A stretch of DNA of 64,000 nucleotides, taken from the sequence record NC_061440.1; one strand, written 5' to 3'. Under the pieces are notes generated by a model, which made no database searches, had not been told where the DNA came from, and saw nothing but the letters and a program-made list of their open reading frames with translations. Below are positions 5,033 through 24,596 of this stretch, one piece after another. The translations under genes and the position numbers were made by a program. Each line of letters begins with the position of its first letter. The first letter of the stretch is position 1.

Positions 5033-5492
5033 CCGAAACTCCTAACGATTTTAAAATTGAAGAACTTGTATCGGAGAAGGCCTTAGCTATTGCTTTAGCG
5101 GCAACCTTATCGACAACGAGAGTGCTGATTCGGCCTTTGGTGTTGCATACAACTGTTTGCGGTGCATACTGTGCAAGCGCCAAAGCGAATAGCAGATGGT
5201 TGCCTAGATCACCAGAGATAGAAACCTCCACGTCAAGTTCAGGCACGTAGATGTTCTGGTTGATTTCGGCAACAAACTGCGCCAGCGCAACGGGGTCGAA
5301 CTCGGGAAGCGCTGTATCATAGTCCTCAACAAGATCAATCTGTCCTGTTTCCGGATAGTAACGAAATGCAGCAGGGTCCGAGATGATGCGACCGAATAGA
5401 TCGTCGCTCACCTCGATGCAATACTCATCCGTCTTTTCACGCACACGACCAACAATGCTGTTGTTCGCTGGGTTGATTCTGATAATAGGCAT
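5016..5492 (-). CDS. Hypothetical protein, possible tail-fibre assembly chaperone (158 aa)
   Basis: GGGAG SD. Directly follows a fibre gene, the usual chaperone position. Confidence 0.6.
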   Translation of the reverse strand: MPIIRINPANNSIVGRVREKTDEYCIEVSDDLFGRIISDPAAFRYYPETGQIDLVEDYDTALPEFDPVALAQFVAEINQNIYVPELDVEVSISGDLGNHLLFALALAQYAPQTVVCNTKGRISTLVVDKVAAKAIAKAFSDTSSSILKSLGVSDEPVD

Positions 5493-6539: not shown

Positions 6540-9416
6540 TTACTCGATCTCACTCGGTTCCCAGCACAGAATTGGGCGGCGCCATACTTGGAACACACCG
6601 ATAGGCGAAGCACGGCCAGAATCAATGAAGCAGTCCATAGTTGTACCACCAGAGTTACCGCTCTGCATAAGAGTTTGCAGGTTAGCAATCCAAGAAGCAC
6701 GTCCACCAGAGTCTGCCTCAAACAGTCCTTCCCACACCATATCAAAAGCACCGTTCCATGCGTTGAAGTGGTGAGAAGAATACGCACCATCACCGACTGA
6801 ACAAAGAACCATGTACTGGTAATCTTTGACGCAAGGAATAGCGTAGTTATTGCCGCGCGGAACTGCTGTACCGTTGTTATTAAAGATACACTCCCAGCCA
6901 GTACGATCAGCAGCACCAGTAGTTAAGAACAGAGGACGACGAATGATCATCATAATCCCGTTCTCACCGCCATTGTTGCTGGACTTCTCGCAGTACGCAT
7001 TACAACGTAAGGAACGGTCCACAGTGAATGTGGTTGAGTTTGAGAAGTCACGGCAGTAGTAGTTCGATCCCCACTTAGGCAGATATTCTGCTGGTGGTAC
7101 AAAGAAGTGACGCTCCGCAAGTTCGATCTCACCGTAACGGTCGTAAGCAAATACAATGTACTCGTAGCCCGCCTCAATCTGAATGTTGTGGCCTTGACTG
7201 CCGATACCATTCCACTTCCATACAACCTGCCAATCGTTCGTATCACGTTCAGGCATTTCGGTAATCAACTGATAAGGACGCTCATATACGTGCCACACCT
7301 TCCCTTCTTCTGTCGTGTTGATATACAACGAAGAAGGGTCATTGATGTTGCCGTTAGACGTACCACAATAAACTTTATGCGATGCACCAGCAGAGTTGTA
7401 GATAGTGCCTGAGCTTACAGACTGGAACATGTCCCAGTTCATCATCAGGTGCGAGGTACACATTTCATTCTGGCCACTACCATCAGAGGTTGTGAGCAGG
7501 TACTCGTTGAGGTCTTTGAACGCATAGCGCACATAGTTAGAGCCAGCACGGTTAACGCGGTGTACCCAGTCATGCGATTGAACTTTCGGCACAGGGAAGC
7601 AAGGGTTAGTGACAGACACGACGAAGTTTTTAGTTTCGTACATCGGCAGTTTCTTGAAGCGGTTATCACGAATCGTTACCGTGTGCTTCATGCCATATGT
7701 CTGCGCACCATCCATACCGCCCAGCACTTTGTAGTACGACTCATGCGCACTCTTGGTGTTTTCGTACAGACTAGTGATGCCAAGCCCAACGTTGCCGTCA
7801 CGGTCAGTGCCGCAGCAGAAGGGCACGTTACCTGAATCAAAGTCAAAGCCAACAGAGTAATAGCTGTCAGGTGAACTTGATTTAGGGCCCCAGTAGAGTT
7901 CGGTGTAAGCAGAACCTTCACCGATACCCGGCTCACCGAACACGCAGTATGCAGCACGATACACGTACTGACTGCCCTGGAACACACGGCGCGATGCACC
8001 AATGCGATACATAGCAGCAGGAAGGCCACCCTGAACACGGTTAACGTCAGCCGTATCATACGACACAACGAAGACATAACAGTCGGTGCCGATTGAGTTG
8101 AGGAACGCAGCACAGGCAGCAGCGTTAGTTGTACCTGGAGCTGTACCTTCGGCCGATGCGTGAATGTCAAACGAGCGGCGCTCAAGCAACGCAAGGTCAG
8201 ACTTACGAATCTTATAGACGTTCAGGCCACGCGTATCTCGGTACGTCACACCATTATAGACAGTGTAGCCATAGTCACCAGTGTCTAGGTAACGCTGATA
8301 ACCAACTACGTGCGAGAACAGTTTACTACGTGCTTGCAGCGACTGACCATTCTGATTCGACCAACTGACCGACACATCACCAGCAGCCATACGTGCTGCC
8401 CAGTCATCAGGCTTGTATGGGTATGTGGTAACATCGAAGTTCACACCGTACGCGGAGCCTGGCTCTACGCAGCATGGATTGCGATAGATGATTGGTGGAT
8501 CAATCACTATGTCATCAGGAATATCGACTTGACCGCAGTACAGTTGCTTCCACGTACCAGGCTGACCTCCGAGCGAACTAGGTCCCGCAGCAGGTGTTGT
8601 GTTGAACTGATAGATAGCAGACGTGCGATAGTTAATCTGATTGTGAAGCTGAGGAACGTTCGTCCACGCAATGTGATTACCGAACGAGTTAATGCTTTTG
8701 TCGTGTGCTGCAGGAGTCGAGACAACATAAGCCTGACCGTTACTGCGAATGCCGAGTGGGTTGAAGATAGCGTTGAAGTTAACGTTACCCTCGTAGGCAT
8801 TCTTCTGCAATACAATCAGGTGGACTCCGTTGCGGTGAGCTTCACGTAAAGCAGTGAGCATCGCTGTAGGCATACTCTGGTTAGTCGCAGACAACAGCAG
8901 CATGACACAACTGAACTGTTTGAAGTAACGGTAGTCGCCGTTGTACCCGTAAGCGCCTGCGTTAATCTCCTGCCAGCTATGCGCTAACATATCGAGAGGC
9001 ATACGCTGCATGTAACCAACGAGCTGGCCCCATGATTCCATTGCTGTGTCGTCGTTGACAGGAGCAAGGTCGGAGATGACCAACATCGTACTGCCGTTTG
9101 TAATGTTTGCGTTGAAGCCACGCTGGGTCAGCAAATGGCGGAACACACCCATGTTGTTGATAGACTTGTTACGGTAGTTGCCCATCCAGCCGTAGTTTGA
9201 ATCCACAAGAGGGCTACCGTCTCGAACAAATCGACCATTCATATAAACAGAGGCAAAGCCGCAGACGTATGCTTGCGCGTGTCCGTCCACTACGAACGAA
9301 GTAAAGCGGGAAGCATCTACCGCCATCGCATTAACAGCAGCCTCAGAGCCATTGCCGGGACTACCACTAAACACAGGAGTGATGCCTCGTGCGTACAGGC
9401 AACTTTGTTGCAGCAT
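6540..9416 (-). CDS. Fibre / receptor-binding protein with ILEI (PANDER-like) domain (958 aa)
   Basis: AAGGA SD. RGLNVYKIRK...RSFDIH...AAFLNSIG...VFVVSYD...YRAAYCVFG matches the ILEI carbohydrate-binding-like domain. Three aromatic-rich repeats near the C-terminus. Confidence 0.7.
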   Translation of the reverse strand: MLQQSCLYARGITPVFSGSPGNGSEAAVNAMAVDASRFTSFVVDGHAQAYVCGFASVYMNGRFVRDGSPLVDSNYGWMGNYRNKSINNMGVFRHLLTQRGFNANITNGSTMLVISDLAPVNDDTAMESWGQLVGYMQRMPLDMLAHSWQEINAGAYGYNGDYRYFKQFSCVMLLLSATNQSMPTAMLTALREAHRNGVHLIVLQKNAYEGNVNFNAIFNPLGIRSNGQAYVVSTPAAHDKSINSFGNHIAWTNVPQLHNQINYRTSAIYQFNTTPAAGPSSLGGQPGTWKQLYCGQVDIPDDIVIDPPIIYRNPCCVEPGSAYGVNFDVTTYPYKPDDWAARMAAGDVSVSWSNQNGQSLQARSKLFSHVVGYQRYLDTGDYGYTVYNGVTYRDTRGLNVYKIRKSDLALLERRSFDIHASAEGTAPGTTNAAACAAFLNSIGTDCYVFVVSYDTADVNRVQGGLPAAMYRIGASRRVFQGSQYVYRAAYCVFGEPGIGEGSAYTELYWGPKSSSPDSYYSVGFDFDSGNVPFCCGTDRDGNVGLGITSLYENTKSAHESYYKVLGGMDGAQTYGMKHTVTIRDNRFKKLPMYETKNFVVSVTNPCFPVPKVQSHDWVHRVNRAGSNYVRYAFKDLNEYLLTTSDGSGQNEMCTSHLMMNWDMFQSVSSGTIYNSAGASHKVYCGTSNGNINDPSSLYINTTEEGKVWHVYERPYQLITEMPERDTNDWQVVWKWNGIGSQGHNIQIEAGYEYIVFAYDRYGEIELAERHFFVPPAEYLPKWGSNYYCRDFSNSTTFTVDRSLRCNAYCEKSSNNGGENGIMMIIRRPLFLTTGAADRTGWECIFNNNGTAVPRGNNYAIPCVKDYQYMVLCSVGDGAYSSHHFNAWNGAFDMVWEGLFEADSGGRASWIANLQTLMQSGNSGGTTMDCFIDSGRASPIGVFQVWRRPILCWEPSEIE

Positions 9417-22904: not shown

Positions 22905-23194
22905 TAGCCAAATCTCACGTTAGAGCTACCGTTAGAAGCTGTGTCACCACAACTGTTTCCATCACCAGCACGTTGAGCGGGCTTGCCGTTAACACGCACA
23001 CTGGAGCTTGATGTTGCTTTACCAACATGCGGAGGTTTCTTAGGCTTCCAGTGTGGTTTATAGGCGTCACCGCTGCGAACGCTTCCCTTGCCGTTGACAA
23101 GCACATTCGTTGATGCCTGTGCTGGGACGACAGGGAAATAACCGCTGTGACCTGTAGACAGATCTGCGCCAAGTCGAATAGCTTTCTGACCCAT
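22904..23194 (-). CDS. PAAR-repeat spike-tip protein (T4 gp5.4-like, 96 aa)
   Basis: RLGAD.STGH, NVLVNGK...R.GD...H, VRVNGKPAQRAGD..SCG, GSSNV.FG. Confidence 0.9.
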   Translation of the reverse strand: MGQKAIRLGADLSTGHSGYFPVVPAQASTNVLVNGKGSVRSGDAYKPHWKPKKPPHVGKATSSSSVRVNGKPAQRAGDGNSCGDTASNGSSNVRFG

Positions 23195-23217
23195 GATTAT
23201 TCTCCTCTGTTAGACAC

Positions 23218-23225
23218 AAATTAGC
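23218..23225 (-). promoter_or_regulatory. GCTAATTT motif (candidate late promoter)
   Basis: Immediately after a terminator and 24 nt upstream of the PAAR start. Confidence 0.6.
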
Positions 23226-23239
23226 TTGTTAGGCCGCAG

Positions 23240-23270
23240 AAACAAAAACGGGCAGCCTCATGGCCACCCA
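23240..23270 (-). terminator. Rho-independent terminator closing the structured region
   Basis: GGGTGGCC-ATGA-GGCTGCCC-GTTTTTGTTT. Confidence 0.8.
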
Positions 23271-23303
23271 GTTTCTGTGCTTGGATTTGTGTCGCCCATT
23301 CCC

Positions 23304-23462
23304 TCACACCCGAAGCGAGTGCCCGACGGCTTTAGCCGATGAGCCGGAATGAATGTCCGAGAGTGACGATACACCTGGTATCGACAGCATGTGACTCTCG
23401 GGCCATGATAGCAATAGACCAAGCATCGCTATTGCCACCAGCGACACTAAGAACAAAAGCAT
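23304..23462 (-). CDS. Possible 52-aa hydrophobic peptide (MLLFLVSLVAIAMLGLLLSWPESH...)
   Basis: GAGGAG SD 7 nt before ATG and a 19-residue hydrophobic N-terminus. However, it lies within strongly paired RNA and may be incidental. Confidence 0.35.
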   Translation of the reverse strand: MLLFLVSLVAIAMLGLLLSWPESHMLSIPGVSSLSDIHSGSSAKAVGHSLRV

Positions 23463-23521
23463 GTTTCGCTCCTCGTGTCTTACTTTAAATAACTACGTTT
23501 GATCAACTGGTACTTTGTTCT

Positions 23522-23549
23522 GCTCGTCGCCCAACATCACTTGAGTATC
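23522..23549. repeat. 28-bp direct repeat, copy at 23522
   Basis: GCTCGTCGCCCAACATCACTTGAGTATC, identical to 23911-23938. Confidence 0.95.
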
Positions 23550-23910
23550 AGAACGTTTCTCTGTCTTTACCGCCTACGTTGCGGTTATACCGCGCACGAC
23601 ACTCACATATCAAGGGCACTCGGCGGAAAAGGTAAGTTCCGAATGTCCTAACAACATGAGTGAAGCGAAGGAGGTCCCGTATCGGTGATCTGCAGGGGTT
23701 CACGCACTTTTAACATTCGCTTCTTTGTGCATTAAATCTTTCGTGGACTCGAATGCCCTGCTAATCATTCCACTAAGATATTTCACACCCTATTGTGAAC
23801 GGGTCAAGCTATGGCAGCACGTCAGCACGGCAGGCAGCGGACACACTCCATTAAGCATTGTTAAGGGCAATGCTCAACAGGCTGTGAACAGCTTGGTCGG
23901 AATAGGTTTC

Positions 23911-23938
23911 GCTCGTCGCCCAACATCACTTGAGTATC
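23911..23938. repeat. 28-bp direct repeat, copy at 23911
   Basis: Identical to 23522-23549. Confidence 0.95.
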
Positions 23939-24524
23939 TCGACCTAAACTTTTACTCTCCACACGACTACAAGGAAGAATCGCGTTTCTGTGACCTGCGG
24001 ATGTTTATCACTCTCAGACTCTTGAGCCACTATCTGGAAGCTAACACGTTGAGTCGTCCGCTGGATGACGTGTTAGCTCTCCTCTCCTCGTCGTGCGAAG
24101 GCCAGAGTGGTAGCTGATGGATTGTCATGAAGTCCTGACAGGAGTCATCGCTTCCCAATGCACACAGGGTGAAAGCCTATGCACATCAGGCAGCGTCTGC
24201 TGCGATACTGCTATCCCCTTGAGAGTGGCCATAGCGTTGAGTTTGCGCTTCGCCAGTCTACGTGCCTGGAAGGTATCTGCCGTGCCTATGTCTGCATTCA
24301 GCATGGTTCCTTTGCTGGGCCTTTTGGGCGTCAGCGACAGAGCAGATATTCATCACGTGGGTGCCGGGGTTGTCCTCACGATTACAGAGCGAACTCAAAC
24401 CGGCTGGAGGCCCGTATGCTCAGGAATGCACATACGAGTTTACCAGAAGAACGGCCCCGCTATGGTAGCGTTCTTCCGAGACATACTGATATTACTATCT
24501 GCAATTTTTATTTACAGATTTTTC

Positions 24525-24587
24525 TTAACCTTCGCCCCAACCACAAGAAGCAGGTTTACCGTCACCGTAACCGATTTTAAACAGCAT
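24525..24587 (-). CDS. Possible 20-aa sORF MLFKIGYGDGKPASCGWGEG
   Basis: TAAGGA SD overlaps the upstream stop, with ATG 7 nt later. Confidence 0.25.
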   Translation of the reverse strand: MLFKIGYGDGKPASCGWGEG

Positions 24588-24596
24588 AGTTAGTCC

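Follow-up and report, generated by a model that had tools for sequence, protein, structure and literature searches.

A ~1.26-kb multi-domain structured RNA with an embedded small open reading frame, predicted by comparative sequence analysis in jumbo phages related to Erwinia phage pEa_SNUABM_22

The 64,000-nucleotide stretch of sequence record NC_061440.1 analysed here (the window) contains a single interval of more than 350 nt that is not covered by open reading frames (ORFs) on the minus strand, namely 23195-24596, located between a gene for a 586-amino-acid (aa) protein and a gene for a PAAR spike tip protein. A first-pass annotation, made from the letters alone, had recognized this interval as the only long ORF-free gap and proposed that it encodes a new large structured phage RNA unrelated to GOLLD and ROOL. 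Comparison of homologous loci bears out this proposal and demonstrates a discrete minus-strand unit at 23239-24520, predicted to represent a new family of ~1.26-kb multi-domain structured RNA with an embedded small ORF. Its body of ~1,040 nt displays many covarying helices, at least one pseudoknot, and near-invariant junction sequences, does not match any Rfam family, and is as conserved as the flanking genes. That a structured RNA exists at this locus is considered virtually certain.

The principal evidence comes from an alignment of 18 non-redundant full-length homologues (57-99% identical), which is imperfect within variable hairpins. RNAalifold derived 270 consensus pairs from these sequences, 125 of which show compensatory double changes; the covariation expected of syntenic homologues, if the first-pass annotation was right, is thus present. 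As controls, the 3′ partners were slid by 1-3 columns—a procedure that preserves the phylogeny—and the columns were shuffled 500 times. Standard pairs occupy 96.2% of the cells in the consensus as compared with 33-44% in the slid controls, where the number of compensatory pairs drops to 24-38 and the covariation score to 0.04-0.10 from an observed 0.371. None of the 500 column shuffles attains any of the observed measures, and many consensus pairs are represented by 3-6 distinct pair types. Assignment to the minus strand, initially suggested by a handful of G-U pairs, is upheld by the whole consensus: since G·U cells (656) greatly outnumber A·C cells (50), and only 84% of the cells, instead of 96%, would pair if the plus strand were read, the structure belongs to an RNA transcribed from the minus strand. 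The minimum free energy of the minus strand, -438.9 kcal/mol, lies below that of 48 dinucleotide shuffles (-410.7±9.6, z = -2.9), while the corresponding z values are -2.5 for the plus strand and -1.4 and +0.3 for two coding controls of equal length; a structured RNA thus also receives modest thermodynamic support. The predicted unit consists of the following features.

23239-24505, minus strand: predicted primary transcript of ~1.26 kb, its 5′ end placed (±10 nt) from the promoter-like motif and its 3′ end at the terminator U-tract
24488-24520, minus strand: promoter-like 5′ element AATCTGTAAATAAAAATTGCAGATAGTAATATC, 33 nt, which can form an 8-bp hairpin
24443-24479, minus strand: P1 hairpin, 11-14 bp, with the conserved apical loop (A/U)UAGCGGG
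24412-24437, minus strand: P2 hairpin (helix 3), with compensatory changes at 9 of 9 pairs
24215-24411, minus strand: Domain 1, multi-helix, with near-invariant junctions CCUCCAGC, UGUAAUCGUGAGGA, GCACCCACGUGAU and AGGCACGUAG; helices 4, 5, 7, 8 and 10 covary
24154-24190, minus strand: conserved 14-bp hairpin CCUGAUGUGCAUAG...CUGUGUGCAUUGGG; helix 14 is 99.5% paired, with 4-5 compensatory positions
24025-24115, minus strand: three-way junction formed by an outer helix (24115-24102/24037-24025), a small hairpin (~24101-24086) and a long hairpin (24079-24038)
23997-24061, minus strand: candidate second pseudoknot, GCGGA (24061-24057) with UCCGC (24001-23997), paired in 18 of 18 homologues
23911-23939, minus strand: hairpin module copy 1 (GAUACUCAAGUGAUGUUGGGCGACGAGC), with stem 23947-23940/23911-23902 (helix 23), 8 of 9 pairs compensatory
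23842-23886, minus strand: hairpin P(26), 15 pairs, 6 of them compensatory
23688-23779, minus strand: hairpin 23779-23769/23747-23736 and pseudoknot between its loop 23765-23757 (AUUAGCAGG) and 23696-23688 (CCUGCAGAU)
23569-23686, minus strand: nested-helix domain (helices 30-33), 96-100% paired, 18 compensatory pairs
23517-23554, minus strand: hairpin module copy 2, with stem 23554-23549/23522-23517; helices 34 and 35, 8 compensatory pairs
23304-23462, minus strand: small ORF of 52 aa, MLLFLVSLVAIAMLGLLLSW..., with Shine-Dalgarno sequence GAGGAG, a hydrophobic transmembrane N-terminus and a variable tail
23279-23424, minus strand: structured 3′ domain overlapping the small ORF, with closing helix GCUUGG/CCAAGC; helices 37-42 are 94-100% paired, with 19 compensatory pairs
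23239-23275, minus strand: intrinsic terminator found by a terminator scan, a 9-bp G+C-rich hairpin (stem 23270-23249) with a U-tract to ~23239

When homologues are folded singly, the three-way junction at 24025-24115 recurs in most of them, and the P1 hairpin is re-formed from unrelated stem sequences in most; the Y3 and SNU34-type lineages fold the P1 and three-way-junction segments differently. The long hairpin of the junction carries the invariant apical sequence CAUCCAGCGGACGACUC, helix 17 shows compensatory changes at 9 of 10 pairs with up to six pair types, and the hairpin at 24154-24190 is the part best recognized by nhmmer in the phages Yoloswag and SNUABM_5. An all-against-all scan for additional pairings revealed the pseudoknot 23765-23757/23696-23688, which is 98.6% paired as compared with 16-48% in slid controls and features double changes at two positions, with three compensatory variants among the 18 sequences; a partial metagenomic copy (L029) reads GCGGG/CCCGC at this place, matching the variant of SNU3. 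The second pseudoknot, GCGGA/UCCGC, is a weak candidate, suggested by a single compensatory event (A-U to G-C) in the SNUABM_34 lineage. Within the limits set by the quality of the alignment, the same scan detected no mutually exclusive covarying antiterminator among the stacked helices. The sequence ACCUCCUUCGC (23677-23665) is near-invariant, resembles an anti-Shine-Dalgarno, and is unpaired in the consensus; it is absent in Y3. The 3′ domain comprises a hairpin (23401-23357) and a three-way junction (23350-23298) in which GAAA, UUCG, and UAAA loops are swapped, and it is recognizable in Yoloswag. The closing helices of the large domains (24214-10/23892-88 and 23721-17/23444-40) are backed by conservation, not by covariation.

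The architecture differs in one important respect from the one first proposed. Among nine helices put forward in the first-pass annotation, five are confirmed by covariation in the 18 homologues, namely 24068-78/24039-49 together with the enclosing 24102-10/24027-37, as well as 24469-77/24445-53, 23868-77/23851-60, and 23394-400/23358-64. The four long-range helices (24277-85/23825-33, 24220-27/24009-16, 23712-19/23640-47, and 23614-22/23316-24) did not survive, as their arms pair elsewhere with covariation or most homologues break the pairing. For example, GCACGGCA pairs locally with 24346-24337 in a covarying manner, and the 3′ arm of its proposed partner is deleted in Y3 and SNU34. This disproves the nesting of helices over ~450 nt. 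The RNA also contains, besides the hairpin module described below, another short direct repeat, GCACGGCAGGCAGCG / GCACATCAGGCAGCG, at 23825-23839 and 24181-24195 (plus-strand coordinates), 356 nt apart.

No other element of the syntenic ORF-less region is conserved as widely as the hairpin module. An exact 25-mer, ACUCAAGUGAUGUUGGGCGACGAGC, occurs at 23935-23911 and 23546-23522 and nowhere else within the 64 kb; the 33-nt direct repeat is 94% identical between copies spaced 389 nt apart. Each copy is carried by a strongly covarying stem, behind a 3-nt bulge. A related hairpin of ~26 nt, UAGACCU.U.U.AGU.GGGA.ACGGG, is found in four more distant genera, with two copies each in Yoloswag and SNUABM_5 and one each in JA13 and JA29; copy 1 of Y3 is of this distant-genera type, and a blastn patch matching the JA13 copy suggests a related module in the unclassified Yersinia phage fHe-Yen9-02 as well. 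The module is the best candidate for a docking site. A reading as a K-turn was rejected: the G·A/A·G signature does not fit, and covariation backs the outer 3-bp stem only.

Both boundaries of the unit are strongly conserved. The AT-rich 5′ boundary noted earlier near position 24500 corresponds to the 33-nt element at 24520-24488, 31 positions of which are invariant in 18 of 18 homologues; the two variable positions, A14 and C20 of the aligned sequence, differ in Y3 and in two SNU34-type sequences. Its core TCTGTAAATA resembles the T4 late-promoter type, TATAAATA, and on account of this likeness the element is read as a putative phage promoter. Behind the stop codon of the 586-aa homologue, the core AAATCTGTAAATA..TAATT or a close variant of it recurs in four more distant genera, among them Yoloswagvirus, Rivsvirus, and Salmondvirus, as well as in fHe-Yen9-02, which carries two copies of the close variant AACTGTAAATA. 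Since the hairpin complement is not kept in the distant genera, the element probably acts as DNA. All four TGTAAATA sites in the window lie on the coding strand, two of them in rare intergenic spaces, and Yoloswag harbors a second copy of the 5′ element's core right before the small ORF. Further copies of (T/A)CTGTAAATAA are located on the minus strand at 24797-24787, inside the 3′ end of the 586-aa gene, and at 55681-55671, in a short intergenic space, where the copy folds into a small, perfectly paired hairpin (ACTGT-AAATA-ACAGT) ~40 nt before the ATG of the next gene. In Yoloswag (L108, 4781-4818), a terminator-like hairpin with a U-tract is situated between the 586-aa gene and the promoter-like motif, which supports the notion that this phage transcribes the ORF-less stretch downstream independently.

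At the 3′ end, the intrinsic terminator anticipated at 23240-23270 is real by the measure of covariation: its helix 43, which shows GU-to-GC as well as compensatory changes, is 100% paired, and the terminator is kept as far as the JA13 and JA29 phages. The terminator adjoins the PAAR start codon at 23194, so that the baseplate operon begins 45 nt downstream, and the space between terminator and PAAR gene is devoid of a TGTAAATA-type promoter motif. The terminator-to-ATG spacer itself (23238-23195, minus strand, ...AACAAGCUAAUUUGUGUCUAACAGAGGAGA...) is almost invariant even in Y3 and SNUABM_34, which is unusual for a spacer; it may represent a promoter or a translational operator of the baseplate operon.

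The first-pass claim that the gap is non-coding and without a credible gene holds for the body, where no ORF is common to the 18 homologues and 115 of 133 distinct indels have a length not divisible by three, but not for the 3′ part, where the conserved 52-aa ORF occupies 23462-23304. The same frame is open in 18 of 18 homologues (47-53 aa), following a variable, unpaired, A-rich linker. Codons 1-21 specify a hydrophobic helix that is conserved, M(I/L)LF.VSLIAIAMLG.LLS, and of the variable sites in the transmembrane codons 14 fall on codon position 1, 7 on position 2 (the most conserved), and 13 on position 3. Indels in the ORF measure 3, 15, and 3 nt, and a lone 1-nt indel near the end alters the last residues in the SNU34 type. 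The tail shows no codon periodicity and resides inside covarying hairpins with GAAA/UUCG loop swaps, one of which includes the stop codon, so that the coding sequence overlaps with RNA structure. The consensus leaves the region of the Shine-Dalgarno sequence and the AUG without pairing partners. Homologues of the small ORF are annotated as genes in Yoloswag (gp109) and SNUABM_5, and the ORF is unannotated in SNUABM_22. The peptide does not match any Pfam or PHROG family, and a search with it returned only the window's own peptide and one Logan cluster, its two Logan contigs being SNUABM_35-like; database records hardly ever call it. In Yoloswag, three protein genes separate the ORF-less stretch from the small ORF, and several do so in SNUABM_5, so that the two appear as separable modules kept in one neighborhood. 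GenBank instead lists the coding sequence pEaSNUABM22_00118 (158 aa, UAW96606.1) at 24117-24593 on the plus strand, antisense to the RNA. Relatives do not retain this ORF, and the gene call is very probably false.

Several functional assignments were tried and rejected. Sequestration of the Shine-Dalgarno sequence by the anti-Shine-Dalgarno CCUCCUUCGC (23677-23665) finds no reflection in co-variation, as SNU3 and SNU34 lose the Shine-Dalgarno sequence yet keep CCUCCUUCGC and Y3 does the reverse; mimicry of the 16S 3′ end by CCUCCUUCGC was discarded because the small-subunit (SSU) model does not match. An antisense promoter for a type I antitoxin would have to be the sole plus-strand promoter-like site, 23381-23409, which falls in a segment that varies among homologues, and promoter-like matches do not exceed chance. 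The protein sponge envisaged at first pass is disfavored for the CsrA/RsmA (CsrB/RsmB-type) and Hfq kinds, whose motifs are not enriched: there are 18 GGA motifs versus 19.3±3.3 in shuffles and three A.GGA versus 5.0, and no GGA is invariant across homologues.

A blastn search matched the interval 23195-24596 to Erwinia phage pEa_SNUABM_22 (MZ443785.1, 265 kb, Alexandravirus) at 100% identity. The interval was found in 46 phage records, 34 of which have at least 80% query cover at 73-100% identity, with patchy similarity in Sasquatchvirus Y3 and the SNUABM_34 group. Every relative examined possesses a gap of ~1.3 kb bordered by the same two genes (KMPT-N and PAAR), within which annotated ORFs vary in strand, place, and presence. 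At aligned positions, the gap is 70-81% identical to AD1, phB78, SNU3, Y3, and SNU34, and flanking coding DNA 67-81%; a gap as conserved as its flanking genes does not behave as neutral spacer DNA. IMG/VR adds metagenomic relatives, among them the partial copy L029, whose flanking protein is just 62% identical. A covariance model of domain 1 (R1, 51 bp) scored 192 bits in the window, 150 in Y3, and 135 in L029; at E <= 10 it found no match in Yoloswag, SNUABM_5, JA13, JA29, or fHe-Yen9-02. As judged from these comparisons, the family proper is made up of Alexandravirus, Sasquatchvirus, and the SNUABM_34 group plus one metagenomic lineage. The distant genera retain the promoter motif, an ORF-less stretch of 620-1000 nt, and the hairpin module, and in part also the small ORF, the 3′ domain, and the terminator. 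In all six genera the ORF-less region is preceded by the gene for the 586-aa KMPT-N protein, the stop codon of which lies at the promoter-like motif or at most ~80 nt away.

Pattern scans of viral and metagenome sequences and of 185,579 bacterial and archaeal genomes recovered the same phage clade only, chance matches aside. The latter comprise ~40 matches to a conserved 71-nt stretch in Mycobacterium, other Actinomycetota, and high-GC soil-metagenome contigs (L084-L107, L064-L081, and L083); as these sequences have 62-68% G+C and do not contain the other motifs of the RNA, they are regarded as unrelated. A blastn search of E. coli genomes and plasmids returned nothing similar. The Rfam check that had been recommended—cmscan of the whole window against the 4227 models of Rfam 15 at gathering thresholds—gave no hit, nor did the loci of eight relatives. 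At E <= 10 the region yields only a chance match to a C/D-box snoRNA on module copy 2 (15.7 bits, E = 1.3), and covariance models of self-splicing introns, RNase P, tmRNA, 6S RNA, and riboswitches do not match. ARAGORN predicts neither tRNA nor tmRNA in the 64 kb.

How the RNA functions is a matter of probabilities. The preferred reading, to which a probability of about 0.4-0.5 is given, holds that the body acts in trans as an architectural RNA akin to the large 'ornate' RNAs. In this view the body would take up a defined three-dimensional fold and assemble, either with itself or with proteins as partners; paired docking sites would be supplied by the two identical 25-nt hairpin modules, and the membrane peptide expressed along with the RNA, as a separable partner, could either tether the complex to the membrane or act alongside it. 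Cis-regulatory leaders seldom exceed 300 nt, and multi-domain RNAs with conserved junctions are typically trans-acting. We infer a trans-acting body because 1 kb of conserved junctions, pseudoknots, and repeats far exceeds known cis leaders, because the initiation region of the ORF is open rather than sequestered, and because the ORF-less stretch and the ORF are separable in Yoloswag and SNUABM_5. A number of points weigh on the other side. The 18 aligned homologues amount to ~5-6 independent lineages; the embedded ORF implies that conservation acts partly at the protein level; and the absence of domain 1 from the distant genera indicates that the RNA is fast-evolving or clade-specific. The AlphaFold2 model of the 586-aa protein (pLDDT 49) is too poor for fold comparison and offers no clue to a partner, and the ends, abundance, and timing of the transcript are all predictions. 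Furthermore, the unit lies directly upstream of the baseplate operon with no promoter motif in between, so that a cis role via terminator read-through is conceivable.

The last point leads to the main rival explanation, in which the unit is a giant cis-acting leader or attenuator that senses a late-infection signal and controls either translation of the peptide or terminator read-through into the PAAR/gp25/gp6 operon 45 nt downstream. The unit occupies the same strand and a fixed position just before the baseplate genes in all relatives, an intrinsic terminator stands directly upstream of the presumed regulated genes, the terminator-to-ATG spacer is almost invariant and the region from terminator to PAAR gene lacks a TGTAAATA-type motif, and in Yoloswag the motif, small ORF, 3′ domain, and terminator all directly precede the PAAR region. 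Yet a multi-domain body of 1 kb is far larger than known leaders, a covarying antiterminator alternative was not found as far as the alignment allows, and the Shine-Dalgarno sequence and AUG are unpaired in the consensus. The anti-Shine-Dalgarno-like CCUCCUU likewise does not covary with the Shine-Dalgarno sequence, only one of the two being changed in SNU3, SNU34, and Y3, and in Yoloswag and SNUABM_5 several genes intervene between the body and both the ORF and the PAAR gene. A cis-acting leader is judged unlikely.

Still less credence is given to the view that the transcript chiefly serves as mRNA for a small hydrophobic peptide (resembling, for instance, a type I toxin, a holin, or an antiholin, or acting in exclusion) and that its long structured 5′ region would mainly confer stability or delay translation. 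In its favor are the conservation of the ORF, its Shine-Dalgarno sequence, its transmembrane N-terminus, its in-frame indels, and its annotation as a gene in Yoloswag and SNUABM_5, as well as the high degree of structure known from type I toxin mRNAs. However, conserved junctions, a pseudoknot, and repeated modules reflect a constraint well above the needs of stability, the translation initiation region is not sequestered, a conserved antisense promoter is missing, and the ORF of Yoloswag has no body upstream.

A new large ribozyme, or the domesticated remnant of a self-splicing or mobile RNA element, is improbable. Size, invariant single-stranded junctions, the pseudoknot, and GNRA/UUCG loop swaps are reminiscent of catalytic RNAs, but group I and II intron, RNase P, and other ribozyme models do not match at E <= 10, no host gene is interrupted, no reverse transcriptase, endonuclease, or transposase is associated, and the fixed position argues that the element is not mobile. 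The idea that there is no RNA gene at all, but a decayed protein gene or a DNA element (an origin, a pac site, or a cruciform, for instance), might appeal to the assorted small ORFs in GenBank records (e.g., the 158-aa plus-strand ORF in SNUABM_22) and to the plus strand also folding below shuffles (z = -2.5), but is effectively refuted by ORF calls that vary among genomes, indels that break frames, a 13:1 G·U:A·C asymmetry unexpected for DNA hairpins, and compensatory changes that keep pairing at 125 positions.

To our knowledge, few bacterial or phage RNAs of more than 600 nt with complex conserved folds have been described, namely rRNAs, group II introns, OLE, GOLLD, and ROOL. OLE RNA is co-transcribed with the gene for a small membrane protein, OapA, which anchors the ribonucleoprotein at the membrane. 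The RNA described here resembles OLE in being a large RNA physically linked to a gene for a transmembrane peptide. OLE, in contrast, is bacterial (Firmicutes) and ~610 nt long, OapA is larger and multi-pass, and the OLE covariance model shows no sequence or structure match to the present RNA; an interaction of the peptide with this RNA would be purely hypothetical. Likeness to GOLLD and ROOL lies in the very large size, the multi-domain and pseudoknotted architecture, the carriage by phages, and the conservation by covariation. Nevertheless, the Erwinia phage RNA matches neither covariance model, exceeds GOLLD in length (~1.26 kb versus ~800 nt), and occurs in Enterobacterales jumbo phages with an embedded ORF. 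GOLLD and ROOL are often tRNA-adjacent; the present RNA is phage-borne, and no tRNA gene lies in the 64-kb window.

Some regulatory RNAs are also comparable. Like S. aureus RNAIII/hld and SgrS/SgrT, the RNA is structured and additionally encodes a small peptide, the RNAIII peptide being membrane-active; RNAIII and SgrS, however, are base-pairing regulators of 200-500 nt, and no complementarity to a target was identified for this RNA. Type I toxin mRNAs (hok/sok, tisB) similarly carry a hydrophobic ORF of <60 aa within a highly structured mRNA, and the small ORF considered here is of that kind (47-53 aa, conserved, with a predicted transmembrane N-terminus). They differ in that neither an antisense antitoxin nor Shine-Dalgarno sequestration was found at this locus, where the leader is 3-10 times longer. 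A further parallel is the ~800-nt non-coding RNA of ICP1, the most abundant transcript of this lytic myovirus, which originates from an ORF-less gap of ~1 kb (PMC7567579). The two RNAs are alike by description: both stem from an ORF-less gap and neither is tRNA-adjacent. Then again, ICP1 belongs to another phage lineage with a Vibrio host, and its RNA adjoins the lysis cluster rather than the baseplate cluster. For GOLLD and ROOL, cryo-electron microscopy reveals architectural, self-assembling RNAs (bioRxiv 10.1101/2024.12.08.627333). GOLLD, ROOL, and OLE are not homologues of the present RNA, and the ICP1 RNA is probably none either. The literature searched contains no description of an RNA at this locus; the RNA is previously undescribed and among the largest structured phage RNAs known.

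Each of the known large structured RNAs opened new biology, and the present one is larger than GOLLD with exceptionally clear covariation. It is possible, though rather doubtful, that it represents the first of a new class of giant RNAs with an architectural role in jumbo phages of Gram-negative bacteria; such an RNA would form a defined nanostructure or ribonucleoprotein complex, dock partners on its two identical hairpin modules, and cooperate with, or be held at the membrane by, the small peptide encoded in its 3′ end. Alternatively, it might be a new large ribozyme. In either case it would constitute an RNA-based infection device without a described counterpart. As the phages are cultivable, lytic, and grow on tractable hosts (Erwinia, Dickeya), function is directly testable, and since such phages are under development for biocontrol of fire blight, the role of a conserved and probably abundant RNA is of practical relevance. 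The findings also correct the GenBank annotation of ~40 genomes, in which spurious ORFs are called and the real small ORF is usually missed, and illustrate that 'gene deserts' of jumbo phages can conceal RNA genes.

The neighborhood of the unit is arranged as follows.

27411-26797, minus strand: thymidylate kinase gene, the first in this order
between the thymidylate kinase and 586-aa genes, minus strand: gene for a 144-aa protein with no assigned function
26357-24597, minus strand: gene for the 586-aa protein, with a KMPT-N domain as its only recognizable feature
23194-22904, minus strand: PAAR spike tip gene, directly after the gap
after the PAAR gene, minus strand: genes for a gp25-like and then a gp6-like baseplate wedge protein

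Given this gene order, the gap marks the junction of a nucleotide-metabolism block and a baseplate block; its initial placement in a late region has to be amended accordingly, as it does not lie inside a purely late block. A functional link to the RNA is possible for the 586-aa protein, for which neither PDB nor NCBIfam offers a match. In SNUABM_22 and SNUABM_28, an extra 76 nt, missing from most relatives, separates the promoter-like motif from the stop codon of the 586-aa gene and contains a micro-ORF of 20 codons, MLFKIGYGDGKPASCGWGEG followed by a stop (24587-24525, minus strand); a shorter micro-ORF, MYIGYGEG and stop, is found in the equivalent place of L029 (~5282-5308). On the other side of the unit, some relatives, unlike the window phage, have a small basic ORF of ~41 aa (MSRCTNWKQYLDILHGKRKL...PKIP...) between the terminator and the PAAR gene, namely L004 (AD1), L006 (2910A), and L010 (SNU3) at ~872-1000, L108 at 6787-6916, and L109 at 7089-7214.

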